DNA from: Magallana gigas
Taxonomy: Eukaryota
Direction: 5' to 3'
DNA: 64,000 bases
Assembly: GCF_963853765.1 (NCBI RefSeq)
Contig: NC_088860.1
Location: 30,628,001 to 30,692,000 of the forward strand
Made by a program: the position numbers and the translations under genes. The notes below the pieces were generated by a model. That model was not told the origin of the DNA. It was given only the letters and a program-made list of their open reading frames with translations, and ran no database searches. Shown here one piece after another: positions 5,695 through 33,227 of this stretch (positions are counted from its first letter, which is position 1; every line of letters starts with the position of its first letter).

Positions 5695-6037
5695 TTGATA
5701 TCACCAACCGTGCACCTGCAGGGCAACCTAGTTTGCTTCTCAGACGTCCATGTTTAAACAAATATGCAGAGCGCTTGCGCAGATGAATAGAAACAAATGT
5801 ACTCGATAAACTTAGAATATTTCACCTAAAATCAAGAAAAAATGTCAGTCATGGATTTTTTATGGAATTGATAAAAAATAATTGTTTATTCTTGTTGTTT
5901 ATACACGAGTAAAAACCATAGTTTTGGGTTCCTTACAGAATTATTAATGTATTTTATTTATCGGATATTTTTCCTTACGCATGCGTACTAACGAACCGCC
6001 TATACAATATGGTGGACAAAAGCTCCTCGGAGAACTA
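5695..6037. promoter_or_regulatory. Bidirectional promoter region shared by CEP19 (-) and EMSY (+)
   Basis: Divergent first exons end in donors at 5694 (-) and 6038 (+). NRF1-like GCGCTTGCGC at 5771-5780 and palindromic TACGCATGCGTA at 5976-5987. Confidence 0.6.
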
Positions 6038-9000
6038 GTGAGATACAATTTTATCGTACAAAGAGTTAATGGCTTGAGTTTGTGCAATTTAATGAACATT
6101 TAAGCAAATTATATATTTCAAATGTTGCTTTGCAAGTTATGATATATTTTTAGATACGCTTTTTAGTCAAAGAATGTACTTTTTCCCCCTGTTGGTCACC
6201 TTTTTACTGAAGTCGGTCACATTTTCCCATGTCTTTGACACTGAATGGATCTAGATGTCATCTCAAAACATTGATTATAAACTAAATACTATTTTTCTTT
6301 TATGGCAATATATTTTTTTCGCATTCAATACCTTCATCGAATTTAAGTGCAAGAACCAATTTGAAGTGTCTGAAGCTGAAGGATTTATTTGTTAAAGAAT
6401 ATATCTTATCTGTTACTGAATAGTTTAAAAATAAAAGATTTAGAATGTATACCACTTCTTAAACTTCAAGACCAGACGTGATTTGATTAACTGAAAGTCT
6501 GTGATGAATGTAAAATCATAGCAATGATATTTGCAAATGGGTCAAATCACTGCGAGCACAGCTATACTATAATTGTGTCTGGCAGAATGTATGTTTGTTT
6601 GCTTATAATGTGTTAGCCCTTGACAATATTTGCCTTAGTTTCTATTTGCCTAGAGTCTGTTTGTCCGAAATTTAAAGATTTAACAATATTTTTAAATATT
6701 AGATTTTTAAAATGAAAAATGTTTTTCATTGAACATACCTGTCTGATGTCATTGGCAATTACATATGTAAATCGAGAGATAAAAAACAAGATGAAACAAA
6801 AATCCAATAAAAAATTGTCAGATTTTTAAACTTTTGTTACCTATTTTCCAGTACCATGTGGCCTATGTTGCTGGACATAAGTAAGGAAGAATGTAAGCGT
6901 ATATTGCGTAGAATGGAGCTGGAAGCCTATTGCTCCATAGTGTCAGCTTTTAGAGCCCAAGGAGATCTCACAAAGGACAAGAAAAAGATCTTGCAAGATC
7001 TACAAACTACACTCAGGTAAAAAAAACATCAGTAGAATATCTAAGAATCCATAATCAAATGAAACTTAGAAATGTATTACTAATAGATGATAACAAAGAA
7101 ATCAAAAAGTTCTATGAAAATTATTCTTTCTTTGCAGTATTTCCACAGAGAGACATAGAGCAGAGGTTAGAAGAGCTGTCAATGATGAGAAACTGGCAAC
7201 AATTGCAGATCAGTGAGTTAAAAACCTGAATTTTATTTCATGTCATAATGTTCTAGGTCTTGTTGAATACTTTACTTTTGAACTGAAATATTTTTTAGCA
7301 TGTGTGGACCCAGTACAGATGCAGAGTGGATGATCGAGGGAAGGCGGCTTATTCCACTGATGCCGCGTCTTGTTCCGCAAACAGCCTTTACTGTCACAGC
7401 CAATCAGATGGCTAATCTACAGGCAGAGAAAAACGCAGCCATGCCAAGTCCATCTAGAACAGGAAGTAAAGAGAGTAAGCTTTTAAGGCTTCCAAAGACT
7501 TTGTCAACTACCCTTACCTCAACAGTGGCCCTATTTTTAGGGCCTTACATAAAAGAGGCCCTGTAAGAAGCATAAAGTTTCATCTTGATTATTATTTCAA
7601 AGCCCCTCAAGTTCTTTTCCTTGTGTTGCAGCAGGCAGTACTTCCTCCAGTCCACCCACCCCTGTAAGTGGGACTGTCACCAAAGTCACCAGACCATCCA
7701 GTCCTAACTCCAATGTGGTGGTACTACCAAGTGGAATGTCTATACACATCAAAGGTTTGCATTTTATATGTCTTATTATTTATGAAAATAATGAAATTTA
7801 AGGGTTCTCTCCCCTAATTCTACTTTTAGTTTTGATTGAAACTGAAAAATTTCATTGAAGACTGAGATTAGCTGATGCATCAAGAAAATTGCAAAATTTA
7901 TGGTTGGTTACCCACTGATTGTCTGGTATATGCTTACTGTGGTTTCATCAATATTCGTTGAATACCAATTTTCGTGGATTTCGTTGTTTAGTTGATCCAC
8001 GAAATTAAATGTTCATTGAAGTGCAATTTTTATTAACATTTTGTATTGATAGAGTCATTGGCCACGAATTTACGTATTCTTGAAACTGTGATTTTCACTT
8101 TACCCACGAAAATTGTTGCCTTTGAAAATTAATGAAACCACAGTACTTAGTATTTTTAAAACTTGTTAAATCTTGCACTAGTAGTTTTTAAGCATATGGA
8201 GGACCCTACAGTGGGTTCTGAAAAACGAGTTGAACAATGACATAATCTTTTTTAGAGCATCATGTTGTGAGACACTATAACCAGTTTCATTGAATCAGAA
8301 AATCAAAAACTGACAGATATTATGGTTTTCTCTCAAGTTACATCCCAGTTTTTTTCACTGTTTTGATAATGATGAAAATCTTTTCAGGTGGACTAAATAC
8401 TGAAGATGAAGAAGAAATGCCTTCCAGAAAAAGGAGGAGGAGCCAGTCTTCTTCGTCAGACTCCATCAACATCGTGTCCCCATCAGCAGGAACCCAGACC
8501 CCCAGGGTCACCTACTCCACTGCAGCAAGCTCCTCCTCAGGAATGTCCCCTGTCAAAATCACAATCAGCAAGAGTCCCCAGACCCGGCCACAGGTCACTG
8601 CCTCCAGTCAGGCCCAAAAGGTTAGGCACAATAGATTTTGGCACTCTGTAAAGAAGAGCTTGTATAGATAGTTTACAATAGATTCAATTTCAGCCAGAGT
8701 TGTTTACTGTCAGATCCTATGTTGGAAGAAAATAAGCATAGATTCCTTTATTTATTGTTCAACCAAATTTAAGTTGTCATACTAGGCATGTTGATGTAGA
8801 TGACACTTTTTTTCTGAGAAATAAACCTTTGCATACTTTAATAGGTAATTTTAACATTGCAAGTGTTTAAAAATTGTTTAAAAACCAGTTTGATCTGCTA
8901 GATGGTGGCAAAGGGACATAAATCAGAGGGAAATGTGTTATACAAAAACTTATCTATAGCAGATTATTGCAGATGCTTATTCAATTGGTAGCCCATGATC

Positions 9001-12000
9001 TGTCTGACCAATTTCTTTTGATTGCTATTCATCCAACTTCATGCGCATTTGTCTACGACTCGATTTTGACCCCTATTGATTTTTAGAGCAAAGTGTCAAT
9101 GTGTACTGGGTGAACTATGTGAAATGTCCAAATAATGAGTACTTTCTTTGTCATTGAAATCATGTATAAATTGGCCAATTTCCATTACCAGTGGAAGATC
9201 CAAATTACTATTTAAGGATTTGGGAGAATTCAGTGGAAAAAAAGAACTTGTTGTGGATTTGTCTTAAATCTTATGATATATTGAGCCTATCCACTTAGAG
9301 TTATACGGTTCTTTTTAAACAGGTTATACTGGTGTCCAGTTCAGGTCAAGCATCATCATCCAGCATCCTTCATCAGAAATCTATCACAGTTCCAGTGGTG
9401 AAAACAACCAGTTCATTAGGTGGGACGCACAATCAAAAATCATCCAACATCCTTCCAAACTCTGGAGGTTCATCCAATACAAACCTGGGAAACATAGTCA
9501 CAATGGCCACATCCATGTCTTCCAGTGCAACAGCAAGTATGTTCAATATTACACACATACCATTACCTGTACACTGTACATGGAAAACCTTTTTCAATGT
9601 TTAAGTCTGTTTTTAGAAGTGAAATGTTTAAGTACTTGCTTTTAATTTCAGATTCTTCATCTACAGCTGTCACATCATCCACTATGACCTTTTTAACACC
9701 AACGGTCAGCATCCAGAAACCTCGCCCCAAGACAGTTCCTAGACAGAGATTCCCTGTGGTAAGGTTTTGCAAATTTTTTACCATAGCTAATTTATTTCAA
9801 ATTTCAGTTTTATTGGAATATTCCTATATTGTAGTTATTAGCTTTTTCAGTTTAATAGCAATATTCCTATAATGTAGTTTGTGTGAGGTTGTCAATACTT
9901 CTTTGTTAAAAAGTAAAACTTCATGTAAATTTCATGTTTAATATTGTATGTAAATCTTAATATGCAGTATACATGTGTAACTGATATAGATACATGTACA
10001 GAAATGGTCGTCATGGATTTTGTTTGATTTCAGAGCCAAGGTCAGCATAAACCAGGAGTGGTCATTCCCATGGGACCACAGCCAGTGCAGCCCTCCCCTC
10101 AATCAATGCAGAACATTCAAATTAAACCTGTTGGGAAATCCCCCTCCACAATTCAGATCAGACAAGAGGGAGGTTAGTTAATAATTTTTCACTCCTTATA
10201 GATCCTTTTTTCAAGTGTTGTGAAACTCAGATGCATAAACAAAACTCCATTTATTTTACAGGCATGAAGATTATCACCCAGAGTTTCCCAGGATCTAGCG
10301 GTAGTAAGATTCTGCCCAAGCCCTCAGGGTTACCGACCAGCTCTGGCACCCCAGTGGTTGTGGTCAGTCCCGGATCCTCCACAGCCTCCAATGTCACTAT
10401 GATGACCAAGCCCATCACCTCTATAGGTATGAAGTCAGTCATGACAAAAAATAAAACTGATAGTTGTGTCTCGCAGAGTAATAATGAGACGTAACTCCCA
10501 GATTTTTTTTTTGCGCTCTTAGCGTATTCAATCAGAATCACATTGTTTACTAATGAAAGCTAAGCTTTTGACGTCATATTAATGTCAAAAAAAGTAGGCT
10601 GCTAGCTTTTACAAAGTGTTATAAAACTTAAATCTGCTACACTGGAAACTTTGCAGTATCATGACCGACAGATGTTTATTTGCAACAAACCTTTAAATTA
10701 ATGATGCATTGTTCGCAATTATTGCTATAGTGTTAAATGTCAAATATTTATAGGTCAAGCTGGCACAAAGATTTTGAACATTACAACACAAGGTGGAAAG
10801 GTCATCTCTACCTCCAGTCGTGGTCCTAACGTTGTGACGGTGAATCCCAAAACGCTGCACCTCACAGCTGTCAAATCAGGAGCAGGGGGAAGTAAGTCAG
10901 GTTATCCATCACTTTTATAGTCAACAATCTTGTAGGAGTAGTAGATTAAAAAATACTTAGCATATTATTTTTGAAACTCATTTAACAGTGGATTGCAAAA
11001 TGTGTTTTAGGTGGAAAGCCAAATGTGATTGTTGTACAAAAGACTCAGCCACGGCGACTTTCTGGAACGCCAACCTCTTCTGCAAAGGGGACCACTGTCA
11101 TATCAAGTCCATTTGAAAAGGTCTGTGTATCCTGCTGTGTCTGTAAAAGTATTGAGGAATTGACAAATATTCAGAAAGATATGTAGTTACATGAACAAAA
11201 TGAATAAATAGTGGAGGTAATATTTCACATTTCAGGAATTGATGAGTTTTCTCCAGAAGCAAGACAGTACTAAGCACATTGTGGTTACATCTGCCTCTGG
11301 TGGTCATAGACCAATAGAAAGAAAAGTCATTGTAACAACACCAGGACAACTAGAGGCTACAAGACAGGTAGTGCATACAGAAAAAGTAGTGTTATGAACA
11401 TGCTACTGGCAATCTCCAAATATTTATTTTGCCTTAAAGCTTTTTGTGCATCTTCTACTTAGCCATTTATATGGTAGTTAATTTACTGATTAATTTTGAT
11501 AAAACAAAAGAGGAGGGAGAATAGTTATTAAAGAACAATATTGCTTGAGGGCTTAGAGATTTAGAGGGCTCTACTGTAGGATAACGAAAATAATTTATCT
11601 GTTGTAGAGGGTTCGCATTGAGAATGCGGAAGGGAAGTTGATCCAGGATCTGATCCAAGCGGCCAGTCAGGAGTCGGAGGGGGGAGGGGACGTCACCATC
11701 AACCTGGACGAGGCCACGCTGGCAGCCCTGACAGGAAACACTGGCAGTCAGCCTTCGGAGACCGTCACCAGTAAAGGTGGGTGGGCTTCATTGTCTCAGT
11801 CTCACAATCTTTGATGCGTAGGATTTATCATCTATAATGCAAAAGTTTCTACTATTTATCCCATGTTTTGGCTGAATTTTCACTGAATCGGCACATAAAA
11901 ATAAAGTTTTGATATAATATGAATTGGGAGTTGCAATGGTTCTTGGGCAATACCAATGATAGATGTTTTAATATCTTGTGCGTATGAAAAAGACTACCAA

Positions 12001-15000
12001 AAATATTTGTGAGAGAAAGATTAAAATTTAATAATGCATGTTTTTGTGATTAGATATGCTTTTATATAATTTTGTGCATTTCTAGCCCTCTTGCCAAGTT
12101 TAAATAGAAAAAAAAAACTTACTTTGTATTTGTTTTGTGTAAATCATATTCTATCACAAATCACATGTAAATCTTAATACAATTATGTTGTGTCTGAACT
12201 GGATATTTTTTAAATTCTCTAGTACTATGATTTCAGGTGCTTCAAATGAAAACCTCCCAAACAATGAGTGGTTTGAGTATGATGACAATTCATCCTTCCA
12301 GTCGGGGGTTGATCAGTCTGCTGTTCAAGCCTTGATAGAACAACAAGGACCTAGCAAGCCAAAGGTCACAGTTCAAAGGTTAGCAACAAGTTATATGACT
12401 CAGGAGCCTTATGTACATGTACAATATATGAGTAAAAATAAATACAGGCTTAAATGTATATAAGAGAAAGCAAGTTTTATTATGTATTTCATAAGAAATA
12501 ATGTGAAAAATGGTGATGTTTTATACCTTCTTCAAGTATTGGAAAATAAAAATGGCAATAGAAATTTCAATTAATAAAAACCTCAATCACCTGATTATTC
12601 ATATGAAACAATATTTTATTAACATTGGAATCTGGAAGTTATTTTGATGTTTTGTGTTGTAGATCTTCAAGTGTCGACATAGGGCAATTGTCAGACCAAC
12701 TTTCTCAACAACAGTTCTACACAATAGGTATGGCAACAAATAATTTTGTAAATTTTTCATTGTTCAAAAAGAAAATAAACTTATTATGAATGCTGTATAA
12801 TGAGTTCTCCTTATTGTTGTACAGAACAAGCTATGAAGATTCTAAATAACCCGGAACAGAGTGAAGCAATGATGATGGAGGAGGTAAGATGACAGATTAC
12901 TAGTATCTTTCTTGTGCATTTGCCTGTATATGTCTTTAAAGAAATTCATTTTGTAAATGAATTGTTAATTAAATCAATTTTTAGACCATCCTGAAAGAAA
13001 CGCACATGTTACAGTTAGGATTTCAGTTGATTCTTTTACACAGATGTCATTTTCTATTCTTGCGACTTCATGTTGCCCAGAAATTTGTTTTTTAATATTA
13101 ATTATATAAATGTTGAAAATAAGAACATTTATTCAGAATCAGGAATCATCATCAGAAGGAAATGTTGTGATAGAAACAGTGAACACATCTCAAGGTTCCG
13201 AGATCACGTCACAGAACGAATTGGAACAAATAGCCCGTAATTTGAATCTCCAGGGAGAGCTCGACCCACAGACAGGGATATTCTACACCGTGACCAATGC
13301 AGCAGGTCAAACTGAGACTCGCAGACTCACGACCGAGCCCAAAGTAGTGACTGAGAGCAACCCTCAAGGGGAGGCAACCCCTGGCTCTAAGGCTTACGAC
13401 TTGTTAAGTAGCTCGCTGGCTCAGGCTCAGATAGATCTTGATCCATATCAGTTCATCGAGGAAGATGTACATGTGTTAACGGACAAATCTCCAGCTAGCA
13501 GTCAAGCTAGCAGTGGCATTGTGGGTAAGAAACATATGTTAAAAGAAGCCCCAATCATGATATGCTTTAACATTTGCTTCTCAGAGTATGTACTTAAATG
13601 CTCATAAATTACAGTTTGGAAATGCATAAGATATCCTGATAATATGGACCTTTCATACAAGATTCAACTACTGTAGTGCATTCATTGTTGAATTGTATAT
13701 AATCATTCCTTTCCTAGCAGAAACTACTGCTGCGGCAACGTCTGACAATGTTGTGACATCGGAGAGCAGCAGGACAACCACAAGTGGTTCCAATCACACC
13801 ACCACCACCATTAGAATCAAGCCAGGCAGCAGTTTTATACCTATACAGGAGATTGCCAAATCATCCACCATCAATGTCACACAAGAACAGGTACTTGTGT
13901 ACTAATACATAGATTTATTTTGGCAACTAAATGCACACTGCAGTATGGCAGTTTATTTCCTGGATGTTCAATTTGCAGTACATAAATAAATGACAACTAT
14001 TAACAGATTAACATGCAAAAGTTCATCAAATGTGTTCACTGAAAATCTGATATTTAATTGATGGAACATTGCATAAATGTGCATGAAAGTATGCATAATT
14101 ATGTTCCTTATATTTACACATGTAAATTAATCAGAATTTGGTTGATGATGTGTCAGTTAAATGTTCAGAGTTATTGTTTCTGTCATGTTTTGATGATTTT
14201 TACTGGAAAAAAACACACCTTTCAATTAAATACAATTGAGGTCTATGAAAGGGAAAGAATCTTGAGCATCATATGATTTTACCATGAAAAACTCACAGGA
14301 ATGAAAACAAATTTCTGATGGAGATTGTTTACATTTTTTCTCCATTTGAAAAGCTGTGGAACACCTCGCAAAGTTTTTTCAACATTATCATCAGGATGCT
14401 TTCATGTTGATTGCAATACAAAATCCTTTTCGACTTTTAATTTTCAGCTGTGTATTGATATCTGACAAGATAGAAAGAATATTGAAAAAAAAAATTCTTT
14501 GATATCATTCATCATATACATTTGTATAAATTACCTTTATGACTATATATTATATGCACACTGTTCATATGTTTTGACATACTGATGTACATTTGCCCGG
14601 CTGTTACAAGTTCATGTATGTGTATGGACTATTTTTATATGTTGAATCTATTATTTAGGCATTTCTATCTAATATCTGTAATCTTGTATGCCCTCTGGGC
14701 CCAAAATTGGAAATAAACTATTATTATTATTATTATATACATGTACATGTATAAGGAAAACATTTTCTTTTCACACAGAGGAGAAAATGATTAAATCATT
14801 TAAACTGGATTAATTCTAGATATTGGAACCAAATTATTATTTATAACAGAGTAACGTGTTTCATTCTAGCAATGTAAGCTTTATAAAACAATTTTTTTAA
14901 TTAGCTTTATTTAAATTCAAGACCAAGTCCAATAAAATATTAACATACACATGTAAATGTGAAGATTTTCATTTAGGATTTTTAAAAAACACAAACTAAA

Positions 15001-18000
15001 GGATTTATGAATTATTTTTAAGATGTAAGATATAGATAGAGAGTATTTAATAATTTATTTTAGAATTTACAGTATTTAGTAAGTTTTGAATAAGATGTGT
15101 AAAATTATTAATAATTTCTGTGTGATTAAGTTGTCACAATCATGCAAATATAAATTTAATACCAATCATTTTATTATCCAGTGATAATTACTGCAATGAT
15201 TAAGCAATTAACCTACTGATGCACAATCAACAGTTTTAATTGCATATGATGGTGAGAAAGGTAGAGACTATGATACCTGTAATTTACACCTGAGCTGTAA
15301 TAGGTGTAATTAGATGCAGCAAGTAGTAGTGTACCAATGAGTGGAGTCTGTAATTGGGAGGGTGTCAGGAGTAGGAGGAAGGACTCAGTAATTGCTTTGT
15401 GTACTCGGGGCCAGGTATATATATAGCCATCCCTCTGGCTAAGCTCATCACAACTTCTGGCTTCTAGCATCACAGACCTTGTGGAAATATTCAGCTGAAA
15501 GCAAAGATACAAATCCAAATAGTATATTTTTTTAAAAAGATATTTTCTACTTTTAGTGAAAGATCTTTTTGATATATCATTTTTTCCACTTTAGGAAAAA
15601 TAATATTTTTTGTGGTATTATCTGGTTAGTTTTGAAATCAGAGCAAAGATGAATGACGCACTTGTCTACGAGAGGGATTTTGCTGACCACCACAATGTTG
15701 ATGGGGAGATTCACCATGGCCGGCGCTATCCCCAAGTCACAGAGTCCTCTGTCATGCCTGCCCAGGCAGAGTACCCCCCTCCCTACTTTCCCCCACCCTA
15801 CTCCATGTCATCTCAGCCCCCCATGGACTACCACTACAACAACTCCTACGCCCCAATGTCTGACTACCAGCAGCAGGAACAGCCTTCTCAGCAGGAATAC
15901 CAGGCCATGCACAACATTGACAGAATCCATGAGTACAAGATGCAGGATGGTGGATCCAATATACACAGACCAGAGCCATTGATGCCAGGAGCGGTGCCCA
16001 TCAGCTACCCTGACCATGGTATGATGAGCAATGGAGCCCAGCAAGAACTGCCTTCAATGAATGGAAACTACCCACCTATGGAGAATTACATTCCAAGAGA
16101 GATGATTGGAAACTTTGATGCACAGTCCTCCAAAGGCATGATTGTCCACGAGAAGACTGGTCGTAATGATGTGGACATTTCTGCTGCTGCTGCTCCAGCC
16201 GACGTCTTCTGCATGGTGGATGGAAGACTCTCCCTGCTCAGCAGTACCACCAAGTACAAAGTCACCATTGCAGAAATACAGAGAAGATTGTCTCCCCCTG
16301 AGTGCCTGAATGCTTCACTGCTGGGAGGAGTTCTCAGAAGAGCCAAGTCCAAGAATGGAGGAAGATGCTTGAGGGAGAAGTTGGACAAGATTGGACTGAG
16401 TCTTCCTGCTGGAAGAAGGAAGGCTGCCCAGACAACTCTGATGACTTCTTTGGTGGAAGGTGAGGCTGTCCGGCTAGCAAGAGATTACGGATATCTGTGC
16501 GAGTCTGAATTCCCTGCCAGGAAGTGTGCCGAGTACAACTGCAAGAAATATCAGACCCCAGACCCCCAGGAAAGTATGGCACGCAAGAACATGGTGTTGG
16601 CTACCAAGCAAATCCTTAAAGAGTTCATGGATATTCTTAACCAAGACCGCTCTCCCATTGGAAACTCAAGACCCCAGCCAATCCTTGAGCCAGAGATTCA
16701 AGGCCACCTGACCAACTTCAGTCTGATCACCCACGGATTTGGATCCCCAGCCATTGTTGCCTCCCTTGCTGCAGTGCAGACCTACCTTACAGAAGTCTTG
16801 AAGGTCATGGACAAGTCCTTTGTCAACGATGGATCCATGCCTCCCTCCAAGAAGAGGAAGCTGTGAGAAGTTCCCTTTGCCTGTAAATAAAGTGCTCTCC
16901 GTGACTGACTAAAACTTACAAAGTACATGTACTTGACTGGATCTGTAATTCCCTACACATTGTGATGTCATATAACTTACTTTTCCATTGTATGTGTTGA
17001 ATGCCTTGAATTGTTCTATTGGTTTCATAATATGTGCTCATCCTTTTGTATGTTGTATTCATCGACTGTAGTTTTAGAACTAATAAATGCTATGAATATT
17101 TGATTCTCTTCTTTTCGTTTTTCTTTTTCTTTGAAAGGGTTTTCAATTATTGCCAATGCATTATAAAAAAAAAGAATGCATGATAACTGTACCAACTCAA
17201 TGTATTTTGAGTACAAAGGAAATATTCTGGAACTTCTTCATATTCAACTTGTTATTGTTAACTTTCATAGAACAGAAAAATATAGTCTCAAATATTAAAA
17301 ACATTATATGATTAGCAGCCTAAATGGTGAAAAAATAAAGAGTTTTTAATTTGCTTTTTGTAGTTGGCACCCAATGATGTTGTTCAGGAAGAGTTCAGCA
17401 CAGAGACGGTCGAGATGACAGGAACGACGGACTTCCTGTCCCAGCCTGCAGCGCTAACGGAAGAAGTCCAGTTAGTGATGGACTCGGTGGCGCTCGGAGA
17501 CCGAACCATTCAAAGCACCGAGACTGTCACCGTGGAAACCACACAAACGGTGGACCCAGCAGAAGTCAGTCTGGACAACTTTGTTGTGATGGATAACCCT
17601 ATACCAGGTAATTAATTACCCATATACAATGCCAAGTTTTTTTTTTTCGAATTAAGAGTCATATGTAATAAAAACTTTTTGTAATACAGAGAAATAATTT
17701 AACATGTATGTTAAACATAAAAGTAAGAAAGAAACAAATAATTCCATAATTTTATCTTAAAGTATACCTTATTTCTCATCTTTGATGCAGAATGTATGAA
17801 TTACTTGTAATTTTAATTATCTTTTTCCCCCAGGAACCAGTGTCAGTGAAGTTCACAGCATGGATCCCCTCAGCAGTTCTGATCCTACAGGCTTGGCTAA
17901 AATGGGCAAGAGGAAAAGGAAGGTTCCTGCAGCTTTAGAGGATAGCCCAACCCCCATTCCTGGGGGAGGCTGGAGCAGGGCATGCTTAGGGTATGGCTGT

Positions 18001-18940
18001 CCACTTCATTGTTAACTTGGTCCTTTACCTTTTGTGTAGAAGATGCACAAACGTATATCTTTGAATGTATTTATTTAGAATATGCTTATGAGGTTGATTT
18101 TCTTATTATTTTTTTTTGAATGATTACATTGTACATGTGTATGTTTTATTGCAGATTAATTCAGAAAGTGATGAAATACAGAGGTTTAAATAGACACAAA
18201 GATGATTTAAATGCCTCGACATGGTTTCTAGAACCAGGTGGGTAGTAAAGATGATATGTTTAAAAACCAGCAGGTATTTTGTTTTTCTTACAAAGAAATC
18301 ATCCACAGGGTAAATTACTGACAAACATAAATGATGCCTTTTCGTTTTCCCCAATACATGTAATTGCATTTTTGTTTCAATATCCGCCCTCTTTCTTTGT
18401 AGTGGATCCAGAAGATGCGCCTGATTATTACTCCATTATCAAGAATCCCATGGATTTTGGAACCATCAAAAAGAAATTAGAGGTTAGTTGTATGGAATTG
18501 TCATAATATAAGGGATAGATTTATACACTTGCCTTTCATAAGAAGTTACATGTTATTTTTGTTGTAAGTTTGATTTATTCATGTGTCAACAATATTTTCT
18601 ATATATGTAAACAGGGTCTTAGTTACTCGGATTATGAGGATTTCCATTCAGACATGCTGCTAGTAAGAGACAACTGTAGGCTCTATAATCCCCCAGGAAG
18701 TGTGGTGCGGAGAGACTGCGATGAAGTGTTTGCCTATTACATGTCAGAGTATGAGAGAATTCTGGAAAAATGGCAAAAGGTAGGCAAATAATAGGGGGGA
18801 AATAATTTCATAATATTTTATGAAATAAGTTATTGTAAATGTATTTATGGTTAATTGTCATTCATTTTATTTGTCAGGCTCACATCTCTTCACCGTCCTC
18901 CAAGAAATTGAAGTTTGAAAGCAGAAGTCCAAAGACATGA
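6009..18940 (+). CDS. EMSY: EMSY transcriptional repressor (N-terminal ENT domain) with in-frame C-terminal bromodomain; 25 coding exons, ~1197 aa
   Basis: Exons: 6009-6037, 6852-7016, 7138-7212, 7299-7474, 7632-7754, 8388-8620, 9323-9536, 9652-9758, 10034-10172, 10262-10426, 10754-10891, 11011-11120, 11236-11367, 11608-11776, 12237-12378, 12663-12727, 12825-12883, 13137-13524, 13718-13890, 17364-17607, 17834-17990, 18155-18237, 18403-18482, 18615-18779, 18878-18940. All GT-AG, phases match, total 3594 nt. ENT signature [24 protein letters not shown]...[20 protein letters not shown]...[33 protein letters not shown] acceptors at 7632/7635 and 13718/13721. Confidence 0.9.
7935..8145. mobile_element. 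~210-bp TA-flanked MITE (Tc1/mariner-like) in EMSY intron 5
   Basis: Terminal inverted repeats TACTGTGGTTTCAT...ATGAAACCACAGTA; second copy at 19613-19815. Confidence 0.8.
15270..15641 (+). promoter_or_regulatory. Internal promoter, 5'UTR exon and 5'UTR intron of the nested AP-2 gene
   Basis: CCAAT at 15334-15338, TATATATATAG at ~15416-15426 and five GTAAT sites (15279-15395). Probable donor GTATAT at ~15522 and acceptor tttgaaatcag ending at 15641, 7 nt before the ATG. Confidence 0.55.
15649..16866 (+). CDS. TFAP2: Transcription factor AP-2 family protein (405 aa), intronless CDS, nested on the same strand in EMSY intron 19
   Basis: Uninterrupted ORF with PY activation motif PPPYFPPPY and AP-2 basic/helix-span-helix region ([68 protein letters not shown]...[17 protein letters not shown]). 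C-terminal NLS-like [14 protein letters not shown] at 16886-16891. Confidence 0.93.
17975..18779 (+). other. Bromodomain encoded by EMSY exons 21-24
   Basis: Spliced translation [111 protein letters not shown]. It has the canonical F.EPV...APDYY.IIK.PMD..TIKKKL and NC..YN motifs, including the acetyl-lysine-binding Asn. Confidence 0.92.
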
Positions 18941-19612
18941 ACTTGATCCTCATGTTCTCAATCCATTGTGCCAAATTTATCTCAGCGTTCTATTGATTAG
19001 CTGAGAGCATACTGTTCACTGCCAGATATTATATATTTTTACTTACATTGTATAATGATTTGTGTGCATGTATTTGTAAGAAATTCTTTAAAGATTACTA
19101 GTTACTCATTCTCCTAAAATCATGTCTTAGAAATTGCTCCATAATTGAAATCTTCTTAATTGACAAAAAGAACCATGTATGGCTCATAGGTACTTAGATA
19201 AACAGGTAAATATAGATACAAGTATGTGTGTAACATACTAGATAGAGATATGAAGTACAATTGATGATTTGATACATATCAAATAGACATGATCATTCTG
19301 TGAGAATTTTAGCCTTTTTTAACCATTTGTAGTGCAATATCATTTTATGTTGAAGTTGCTGACTTTGGTATTTTCCACCCATTTACTCTGAATGTCTTAT
19401 TTAAATGACTCAGTAGTTTAGATATGTGGAAATAAGGTTATTGAAAGTTAGGTCTTTGAAGAATTATCATATTTGTGTTTGTTATGTTATTGTTTACGAC
19501 TTGAAGGCATTTGTATATTCTCCTGAATATCGATTTCTATTACGTTTCAAATCTAGCATATTAAATTTGTTTAACATTAAAGTGAGTTTGTTAATGTTTG
19601 ATAATTCTTACA

Positions 19613-32302: not shown

Positions 32303-33227
32303 GACTGGAAGAAAGAAGGAGTGACACTGCCTCACAATGAAAACAATTTTATTCATGTCCCTAGGAAATTCCAAATTATTATAATATTGAATCACTTGTG
32401 TACTACTTATCCATAATCATATTAATGCATACATATTTCATTGGGTACATGTATTACCACATTTTGACATACAGCATGGGGGGGGGGGGGTTGCATGTTT
32501 TCTTGAATGCAGGACTACTCTAGTACTTACACTAGATTTGATGTGGAGTTCCAGCAACACATCATACCACTGTCTGTCATCGGAATGACTATGCGAGGAA
32601 ACATCTATGCTGTGCTGAAATTTATAATTTTTTTTTCAATATGAATTTATAAAATTTTTGATTGTTTGCTGCTTTTTATCAATCCAATCTGTATATTTCA
32701 TAAACCAACTTTGTTTAAAAATTTGACATAAATAATAAATTCATAAGAATGTTCTTTAAAGATATATTAAAAGCTGAACCATTCGCTTGTCTGCAATATT
32801 GCCCCCCCCCCCCCCAAATTATGTTGANNNNNNNNNNNNNNNNNNNNNNNNNNNNNNNNNNNNNNNNNNNNNNNNNNNNNNNNNNNNNNNNNNNNNNNNN
32901 NNNNNNNNNNNNNNNNNNNNNNNNNNNNNNNNNNNNNNNNNNNNNNNNNNNNNNNNNNNNNNNNNACATATGTAGGGTAATTGCATCATTTAATATCAAT
33001 TTGAAGTCACGAGAAGAGAGAAAACTGATTTAGTAAACGATATATATATATTGACATCCATCATGGCGACATTTTAGCAAAATGGCATCCCGCATCGCGC
33101 AGAGAAAGAATTCACATTATAAATGGCTAAATTCATGCTATTGTGAAAATTAAACGTTAATTCTGAGAGCCATTACCCTCTTTGACGAGCTCTTGCTCTT
33201 TCTTTCGGATGATCGCTCTCTTTTCAT
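30929..33227 (-). CDS. Putative unrecognised multi-exon gene, incomplete (spans the assembly gap)
   Basis: Minus-strand exons with canonical sites, each a multiple of 3: 33177-33227 (MKRERSSERKSKSSSKR|GTAATG), 32531-32614 (HSIDVSSHSHSDDRQWYDVLLELHIKSS|GTAAGT), 31917-31973 (QQPSFVSFRHAWKEHMNDY|GTAAGA), 31553-31627 (YQLTSAINKSEDRRELPTVPQPTHT|GTATGT), 31199-31378 (IEWLARTSFRHRPVRL...; contains a TGA; |GTAAGT). A terminal exon starts at 31006. One more acceptor at 31840 lacks a clear donor. Confidence 0.5.
32014..32086. repeat. (GA)n microsatellite
   Basis: Perfect AG/GA dinucleotide run. Confidence 0.97.
32240..32297. repeat. (GA)n microsatellite
   Basis: Perfect AG/GA dinucleotide run. Confidence 0.97.
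32828..32965. other. Assembly gap (138 N)
   Basis: Run of N. Confidence 0.99.

Follow-up and report, generated by a model that had tools for sequence, protein, structure and literature searches.

The Pacific oyster EMSY gene encodes an ENT domain and a C-terminal bromodomain in one transcript

Introduction

EMSY has been studied almost only in mammals, where the protein lacks a chromatin-reading domain. A window of 64,000 nucleotides (nt) from contig NC_088860.1 of the Pacific oyster, Magallana gigas, holds an EMSY gene followed on the same strand by exons that encode a bromodomain. Do the two domains belong to one protein, and could such a protein read acetyl-lysine? An AP-2 transcription-factor gene lies between exon 19 and exon 20, so a two-gene reading was plausible beforehand. 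A first, sequence-only reading of the window had proposed that ENT and bromodomain are fused, and had implied that the architecture is new. We find that the locus is very probably the single EMSY orthologue of the Pacific oyster. Its protein has ENT near the N-terminus, then a long low-complexity body, and at the C-terminus a bromodomain (approximately residues 1057-1175), a layout that is very probably ancestral.

Gene structure and the ENT-bromodomain transcript

Coordinates of the gene model are positions in the window, which consists of AT-rich animal DNA with short exons; all EMSY exons lie on the plus strand. The model comprises 25 coding exons between positions 6009 and 18940, with a coding sequence of 3579 nt, GT-AG borders at all introns and one GT-AG solution per intron. 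Its translation equals, residue for residue, the 1192-residue RefSeq protein 'BRCA2-interacting transcriptional repressor EMSY isoform X3' of M. gigas (P0158), in which the Pfam domains ENT and Bromodomain are both present. The spliced C-terminus is 100% identical to P0158 residues 930-1192. The features of the gene are the following.

6009-6037 (+): coding exon 1, with the ATG at 6009; residues 1-10; exact match to P0158, unique GT-AG solution
6852-7016 (+): coding exon 2, first part of ENT (Pfam match at 6856-7017, E 3.6e-14); exact match to P0158
7138-7212 (+): coding exon 3, second part of ENT (second ENT match in the whole-genome scan); exact match to P0158
7299-7474, 7632-7754, 8388-8620, 9323-9536, 9667-9758, 10034-10172 and 10262-10426 (+): coding exons 4-10, low-complexity EMSY body
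10754-10891, 11011-11120, 11236-11367, 11608-11776, 12237-12378, 12663-12727 and 12825-12883 (+): coding exons 11-17, low-complexity EMSY body
13137-13524 (+): coding exon 18, residues 743-872; in RNA contigs of runs X1, X5 and X7, with the junction to exon 19
13718-13890 (+): coding exon 19, residues 872-929; alternative NAGNAG acceptor at 13718 or 13721 (joints 13523->13717 and 13523->13720)
13891-17363 (+): intron 19, 3473 nt, GT..AG, removed from the mRNA; holds the nested AP-2 gene and an interspersed repeat
17364-17607 (+): coding exon 20, linker region, residues 930-1011; position of the 'VEPS...DFTSQ' motif of other animals
17834-17990 (+): coding exon 21, residues 1011-1063; basic KRKRK stretch and start of bromodomain helix Z (W1057); joint seen in RNA
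18155-18237 (+): coding exon 22, residues 1063-1091; end of helix Z, family-specific ZA-loop insertion, W1086-F1087 (18222-18227)
18403-18482 (+): coding exon 23, residues 1091-1117; ZA loop with Tyr1099 (18426-18428) and helix A; Pfam Bromodomain E 6.7e-8; joint seen in RNA
18615-18779 (+): coding exon 24, residues 1118-1172; helices B and C with Asn1142 (18687-18689); Pfam Bromodomain E 7.5e-7; joint seen in RNA
18878-18940 (+): coding exon 25, basic Ser/Pro tail conserved in the alignment of 40 orthologues; stop codon TGA at 18938-18940

Each intron of the region from exon 4 to exon 17 has a unique GT-AG solution, and the encoded body is collinear with vertebrate EMSY. A scan of the whole assembly with the ENT profile (PF03735) returned a single locus, EMSY; there is therefore no EMSY paralogue without a bromodomain in this assembly.

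Exons 20 to 25 form six segments with AG/GT borders that join into one open frame of 263 residues, and our exon 20 is the exon 20 of the sequence-only reading. The phases agree: both the end of exon 19 (13890) and the start of exon 20 (17364) are in phase 0. This match alone does not decide the matter, because it has a one-in-three chance of arising anyway. Nor does the earlier argument that exon 20 lacks a start codon, which is invalid, as in-frame ATG codons occur in this exon; the RNA joint decides instead.

RNA evidence comes from four oyster RNA-seq runs (contigs of X1, X5 and X7, and raw stranded poly(A) reads of X20), which were compared with positions 13100-19000. Contigs of three runs (X1, X5 and X7) and a single raw X20 read contain the joint 13890->17364, a GT..AG junction that skips 3473 nt; the X5 contig has 169 nt on the shorter side of this joint. 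All five junctions downstream of exon 20 are seen in RNA exactly as predicted, including the exon 24 to exon 25 joint 18777->18876 in three contig runs and two raw reads, which bears out the in-frame splicing proposed for 17364-18940. Furthermore, contig 6 of X5 (3807 nt, depth 52) spans exons 18, 19 and 20 to 24 and continues for 2256 nt further upstream. Given the 3-nt-shorter exon 19 acceptor, its length fits a reach to about 30 nt upstream of the ATG. A Logan contig of 4229 nt, which is too short for the 13-kb gene and is thus a transcript, encodes a protein of 1192 residues that is 99% identical to P0158 and has both ENT and Bromodomain.

The read mates of X20 place RNA on the plus strand across all exons, and no RNA joint leads into the AP-2 region in the four runs. 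Exons 18-24 carry 24 expressed variants, of which 23 are synonymous in the frame of the model; in exons 20-24 all ten are (five of five in exon 20 and four of four in exon 24). The ENT exons and those of the bromodomain are parts of a single gene and are joined in one mRNA. The proposed fusion is confirmed by the RNA joint, the X5 contig and the RefSeq and Logan models, and exons 20-25 are almost certainly not a gene of their own.

Two variations accompany this structure. At the tandem NAGNAG acceptor of exon 19 (13716-13721), X7 uses 13718, X5 uses 13721 and X1 uses both, giving isoforms that differ by one residue. The last codons of exon 20 carry linked synonymous variants at 17603 and 17606 (ATA>ATT and CCA>CCT). 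The odd 'AC..CA' joint with TCCT between its halves that the aligner reports is due to the allele with these two variants and is not an alternative splice site.

Fold and conserved residues of the bromodomain

The Pfam Bromodomain profile (PF00439, cut-off 21.7 bits) matches single exons of the oyster gene, with 32.8 bits for exon 23 and 29.5 bits for exon 24, and it matches all 28 orthologues scanned (best E 2.2e-24). The AlphaFold2 model of residues 1030-1192 has a predicted local distance difference test (pLDDT) score of at least 94 over approximately residues 1060-1170. It contains helices Z, A, B and C, arranged as a left-handed four-helix bundle with ZA and BC loops and with helices at 28-40 (helix Z), 80-88, 95-112 and 118-146 in model numbering. 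The best Foldseek matches are BPTF bromodomains, with template modelling (TM) scores of 0.85-0.90 by target, a root-mean-square deviation of 1.7 Å and approximately 30% identity; BAZ2A, CBP/p300, GCN5 and CECR2 follow. By sequence, too, the closest solved structure of a single bromodomain is BPTF (E 7e-19). The structure prediction suggested by the sequence-only reading thus returned a confident four-helix model that superposes on BPTF.

We aligned the last ~165 residues of 40 EMSY orthologues, from sponge to amphioxus. Invariant positions include N1142 in the 'YN' motif of the BC loop, Y1099 in the ZA loop, W1057 at the start of helix Z, W1086, F1087 and a 'P-M-D' motif, among others, and the Tyr before Asn1142 is kept in nearly all sequences. 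Judged from this conservation and from the synonymous variants, the bromodomain is under strong purifying selection. It is complete and retains the residues needed for acetyl-lysine recognition. The claim of a complete domain with its ZA-loop Tyr and BC-loop Asn is thus upheld by the Pfam matches, the BPTF-like model and the alignment.

The entrance to the pocket had been called atypical. An insertion in the ZA loop is indeed present, a stretch of ~13 residues after helix Z with the consensus RG.NR.KG..NA..WF, which is conserved from sponges to amphioxus. The canonical WPF shelf is replaced by S-T-W-F in the oyster and by (S/T/A)-W-F in the family consensus, in which W and F are invariant and the Pro is missing. 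Both features are conserved across the family, however, and on this comparison they are its signature, not an oyster peculiarity. The WPF shelf is typical of BET, BPTF and GCN5-like bromodomains and is not universal; since many accepted bromodomains lack it, its absence does not exclude membership of the family.

The domain might have the fold of a bromodomain without reading acetyl-lysine, acting instead as a protein-interaction module or as a reader of another acylation. The (S/T)WF sequence in place of WPF and the conserved insertion, which alters the pocket entrance, speak for such a role, as does the fact that the best-matching structure in Foldseek is a BPTF bromodomain solved with a crotonyl-lysine peptide. 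Compared with the first bromodomain of BRD4, the loop after helix Z has several extra residues, and together with (S/T)WF this means that the ligand preference could differ from that of classical readers. On the other side, the Asn and the ZA-loop Tyr are invariant in the 40 orthologues, which span Metazoa, with a Tyr before the Asn in nearly all of them, and the pocket-forming helices, modelled with pLDDT > 94, superpose on BPTF at 1.7 Å. We regard a non-reader as unlikely, though likelier than the other alternatives, and favor a domain that would recognise acetyl-lysine.

Transcript depth and isoforms

Does the bromodomain form part of the main EMSY product? It is very improbable that the mRNA with the bromodomain is a minor isoform and that most oyster EMSY ends before exon 20, as in vertebrates. 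Some observations do weigh against our reading here. Contig depth in X7 is 77 on exons 18-19 versus ~19-25 on the 3' exons (20-25), and a minor isoform without the bromodomain may be compatible with this drop. Some plus-strand reads of X20 lie inside intron 19. In addition, the reach of the X5 contig to the ENT exons is deduced from its length. Depth is nevertheless similar on exons 18-19 and 20-24 in X1, X5 and X20, the last consisting of raw poly(A) reads, and the RNA contains neither an alternative terminal exon nor another joint out of exon 19. The strong purifying selection indicated for the bromodomain also argues for its presence in the main product.

Distribution across animals

The exhaustive search with exon 24 returned many proteins of 1000-1900 residues that carry the matching domain at the extreme C-terminus and are named 'BRCA2-interacting transcriptional repressor EMSY(-like)'. 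Bromodomain is present in 28 of the 28 relatives that were aligned and ENT in 19; where ENT is lacking, the model is in most cases truncated at the N-terminus and starts inside conserved EMSY sequence. Both domains are annotated together in bivalves, gastropods, a chiton, Lingula, nemerteans and annelids, in the myriapods Strigamia and a millipede, and in hemichordates, amphioxus and all echinoderm classes sampled. The same holds for the cnidarians Dendronephthya, Hydractinia and Sanderia, for Trichoplax (UniProt B3S7M2, 'Bromo domain-containing protein') and for the sponges Sycon and Corticium.

The survey covers animals outside the tunicates, the cyclostomes and most arthropods. A search restricted to the bromodomain region reached, owing to its word filter, only lophotrochozoans (molluscs, a brachiopod and an annelid) and a few plant proteins; the wider spread comes from the exhaustive representative search and cluster look-ups.

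Models from vertebrates (birds, a newt, teleosts and a ray) carry Pfam ENT only, in agreement with the earlier statement that vertebrate EMSY has no bromodomain, and so do those from insects (termites and a katydid). In both groups the protein extends for only 10-35 residues beyond the conserved 'VEPS...DFTSQ' motif. The oyster exon 20 region lies at the position of this motif, of which the oyster copy is diverged, and the part lacking in vertebrates and insects is the KRKRK stretch with the bromodomain that follows it. No vertebrate protein was found among the close single-domain matches of the bromodomain, which favors loss over fission. The simplest reading of these comparisons would be an ancestral metazoan ENT-bromodomain fusion with later losses in vertebrates and insects.

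In a few species the bromodomain part of EMSY is modelled as a separate protein: Elysia crispata (P0198/P0115), Octopus sinensis (P0030), Priapulus (P0037) and Elysia marginata (P0404). Such models bear misleading names ('GCN5', 'SWR1 complex bromodomain subunit bdf1-like' and 'female sterile-like'). They are probably split or partial gene models and not true fissions.

The claim of novelty does not stand. Wide annotation in invertebrate EMSY had been named beforehand as what would refute it, and this is the case: ENT with Bromodomain is already annotated in dozens of invertebrates, from sponges to amphioxus, and this very protein is in RefSeq with both Pfam domains. The ENT-bromodomain EMSY is already known from databases, and the present result is the correct reading of an annotated gene: a database fact and not a new discovery, with no new kind of element. 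We found no paper on a metazoan EMSY with ENT and bromodomain in the open-access literature.

The nested AP-2 gene and other contents of intron 19

The 3.5-kb intron between exons 19 and 20 contains an AP-2 gene that the sequence-only reading had overlooked and that gave the real ground for doubting the fusion.

15649-16866 (+): intronless AP-2 transcription-factor open reading frame (ORF), 405 residues from the first ATG, plus stop; AATAAA at 16886; within intron 19 and not part of EMSY

The open frame runs over 420 codons (15604-16863, with the ATG at 15649) between the end of exon 19 at 13890 and the start of exon 20 at 17364, and it matches positions 1-196 of the 197 of Pfam TF_AP-2 (E 5.8e-74). 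AP-2 is transcribed at a low level in three runs, as separate low-depth contigs; the X5 contig ends at 16915, ~25 nt past the AATAAA. The poly(A) run X20 has no reads in the AP-2 region. The ORF was also considered as an EMSY exon or as part of a chimera, and this was rejected: stops flank the frame, which has an ATG and an AATAAA of its own and shows no RNA joint to EMSY.

It is hardly credible that exons 20-25 are a separate bromodomain gene downstream of AP-2, with read-through or an assembly chimera mimicking a fusion. In favor of it are the complete AP-2 gene, which sits between exons 19 and 20 on their strand and has a poly(A) signal, the in-frame ATGs of exon 20 and the split models of some genomes (adjacent ones in Elysia crispata and one of 330 residues in Octopus). 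Against it, four runs, which come from three studies or more and include a raw read, show the exact GT..AG joint 13890->17364; no joint enters the AP-2 region, and in three runs the two sides of the joint have equal depth. The fusion is also present in the RefSeq and Logan transcript models, the same architecture extends from sponge to amphioxus in species without a nested AP-2, and the exon 20 region sits at the position where vertebrate EMSY has its C-terminal end.

Saccostrea cucullata and Ostrea edulis likewise have a single-exon AP-2 gene within EMSY and on its strand; the Saccostrea gene is 86% identical, and the Ostrea one encodes 446 residues. The nesting thus appears to predate the split of Magallana, Saccostrea and Ostrea. 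The nested gene looks like an old retrocopy, approximately 55% identical to canonical AP-2. There are three AP-2 loci in the oyster genome: besides the nested one, these are an apparently intronless one with a 437-residue frame at G000:C3:5088824-5089414 (-) and a multi-exon one at G000:C7:36449331-36453536 (-). The nested gene shows why gene models can split at the EMSY locus. In some molluscs the annotation has one model with ENT alone and another with the bromodomain alone; the nested AP-2 is known from Ostreidae only.

Intron 19 also contains an interspersed repeat of ~220 bp at ~14517-14738, with at least 40 copies in the genome, some of them 99-100% identical. RNA contig depth on this repeat reaches ~770 in X7, and reads of the stranded run come from the opposite strand. 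The high-depth region 14479-14872 has no Rfam match. It was considered as an intronic non-coding RNA and rejected on the absence of an Rfam match and on the repeat nature of its core; since the core is an interspersed repeat, the local spike in depth comes from other loci. The repeat is probably a young MITE- or SINE-like element.

Elsewhere in the intron, contigs of X1 cover nearly all of the sequence (13934-15530 and 16900-17251) at a depth of ~10-12, and none covers intron 20. X20 has a few plus-strand reads at 14085-14478 and 15070-15463. Pre-mRNA could account for this coverage, and so could an extended AP-2 transcript or carried-over DNA. The window has a single run of N, with 138 bases at 32828-32965.

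Proposed function

EMSY is a subunit of a SIN3-HDAC/KDM5 complex in fly and mammals, and the interactions of the mammalian and fly proteins involve BRCA2, HP1/BS69 and the SIN3B-KDM5A complex. For the oyster protein we infer acetyl-lysine reading by the bromodomain. From what is known of bromodomains in general, the domain would bind acetyl-lysine on histone tails via Asn1142 and Tyr1099. On the model of the fly and mammalian proteins, it may tether or orient the SIN3-HDAC/KDM5 complex on acetylated, active chromatin, and dimerisation and partner binding would fall to the ENT domain. It counts against this picture that its SIN3/KDM5 component is carried over from fly and mammalian EMSY.

The locus has comparative value, as the ancestral animal EMSY would have had a well-conserved bromodomain that was lost in vertebrates and insects, a point that may be under-appreciated. 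This suggests that EMSY complexes may at first have been targeted to acetylated chromatin directly.

Comparison with known proteins and systems

RefSeq EMSY isoform X3 of M. gigas is identical to the product of the window, with nothing different. EMSY of other invertebrates (Ostrea, Mytilus, Haliotis, Lingula, Saccoglossus, Branchiostoma, Acanthaster, Hydractinia, Trichoplax and Sycon) has the same layout, with ENT and a C-terminal bromodomain, and shares with the oyster the KRKRK stretch before the domain, the ZA insertion, the W-F pair, the Tyr, the Asn and the basic tail. In contrast, the low-complexity middle diverges, and overall identity is 23-55%. Only in Ostreidae (Magallana, Saccostrea and Ostrea) do we see an AP-2 gene within the intron that precedes the bromodomain module.

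Vertebrate EMSY (C11orf30) and insect EMSY are orthologous to the oyster protein. They have in common with it the N-terminal ENT domain, a 16-letter protein motif and 'VEPS...DFTSQ', and they show collinear similarity over most of its length, with E down to 1e-108. A BLASTP comparison of P0158 with newt EMSY covers residues 12-1053 (E 7e-108), and bird, ray and fish EMSY give E values from 1e-97 to 1e-99. They differ from the oyster in lacking the KRKRK stretch and the bromodomain.

The bromodomain of BPTF, a subunit of NURF, has a four-helix fold like that of the oyster domain (1.7 Å), and the two have the motifs 'PV..., APDYY.IIK.PMD' and 'NC..YN' in common. Their identity is ~30%, BPTF has WPF where EMSY has (S/T)WF, and the loop after helix Z is longer in EMSY. 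The protein context also differs, with PHD fingers in BPTF and ENT in EMSY.

ENT proteins have been paired with acetyl-lysine readers outside animals. The Arabidopsis ENT proteins EML1/2 are in a complex with the BET reader GTE4 (bioRxiv 10.1101/2024.07.25.605061), and in Leishmania the ENT protein LmxM.24.0530 belongs to the BDF5-proximal proteome (PMC9279504). We tentatively consider that ENT-bromodomain coupling might be an ancient chromatin module, present in cis in ancestral animal EMSY and in trans in plants (EML-GTE4) and kinetoplastids, and lost independently from vertebrate and insect EMSY, which would then rely on partner readers; the odds are somewhat against so broad a scheme. No discussion of this idea was found in the open-access literature, though the architecture is in sequence databases. 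If it is true, the fused EMSY of invertebrates serves as a 'Rosetta stone' from which a bromodomain partner of vertebrate EMSY can be predicted; the vertebrate protein may need one just as plant EMSY-like proteins rely on GTE4.

The pairs EML1/2-GTE4 and LmxM.24.0530-BDF5 resemble oyster EMSY in combining an ENT protein with an acetyl-lysine reader on chromatin, a likeness of function. Plant EMLs themselves carry an Agenet/Tudor reader of H3K4me3 instead of a bromodomain. In Arabidopsis and Leishmania the two domains reside on separate polypeptides, whereas in the oyster a single polypeptide holds both.

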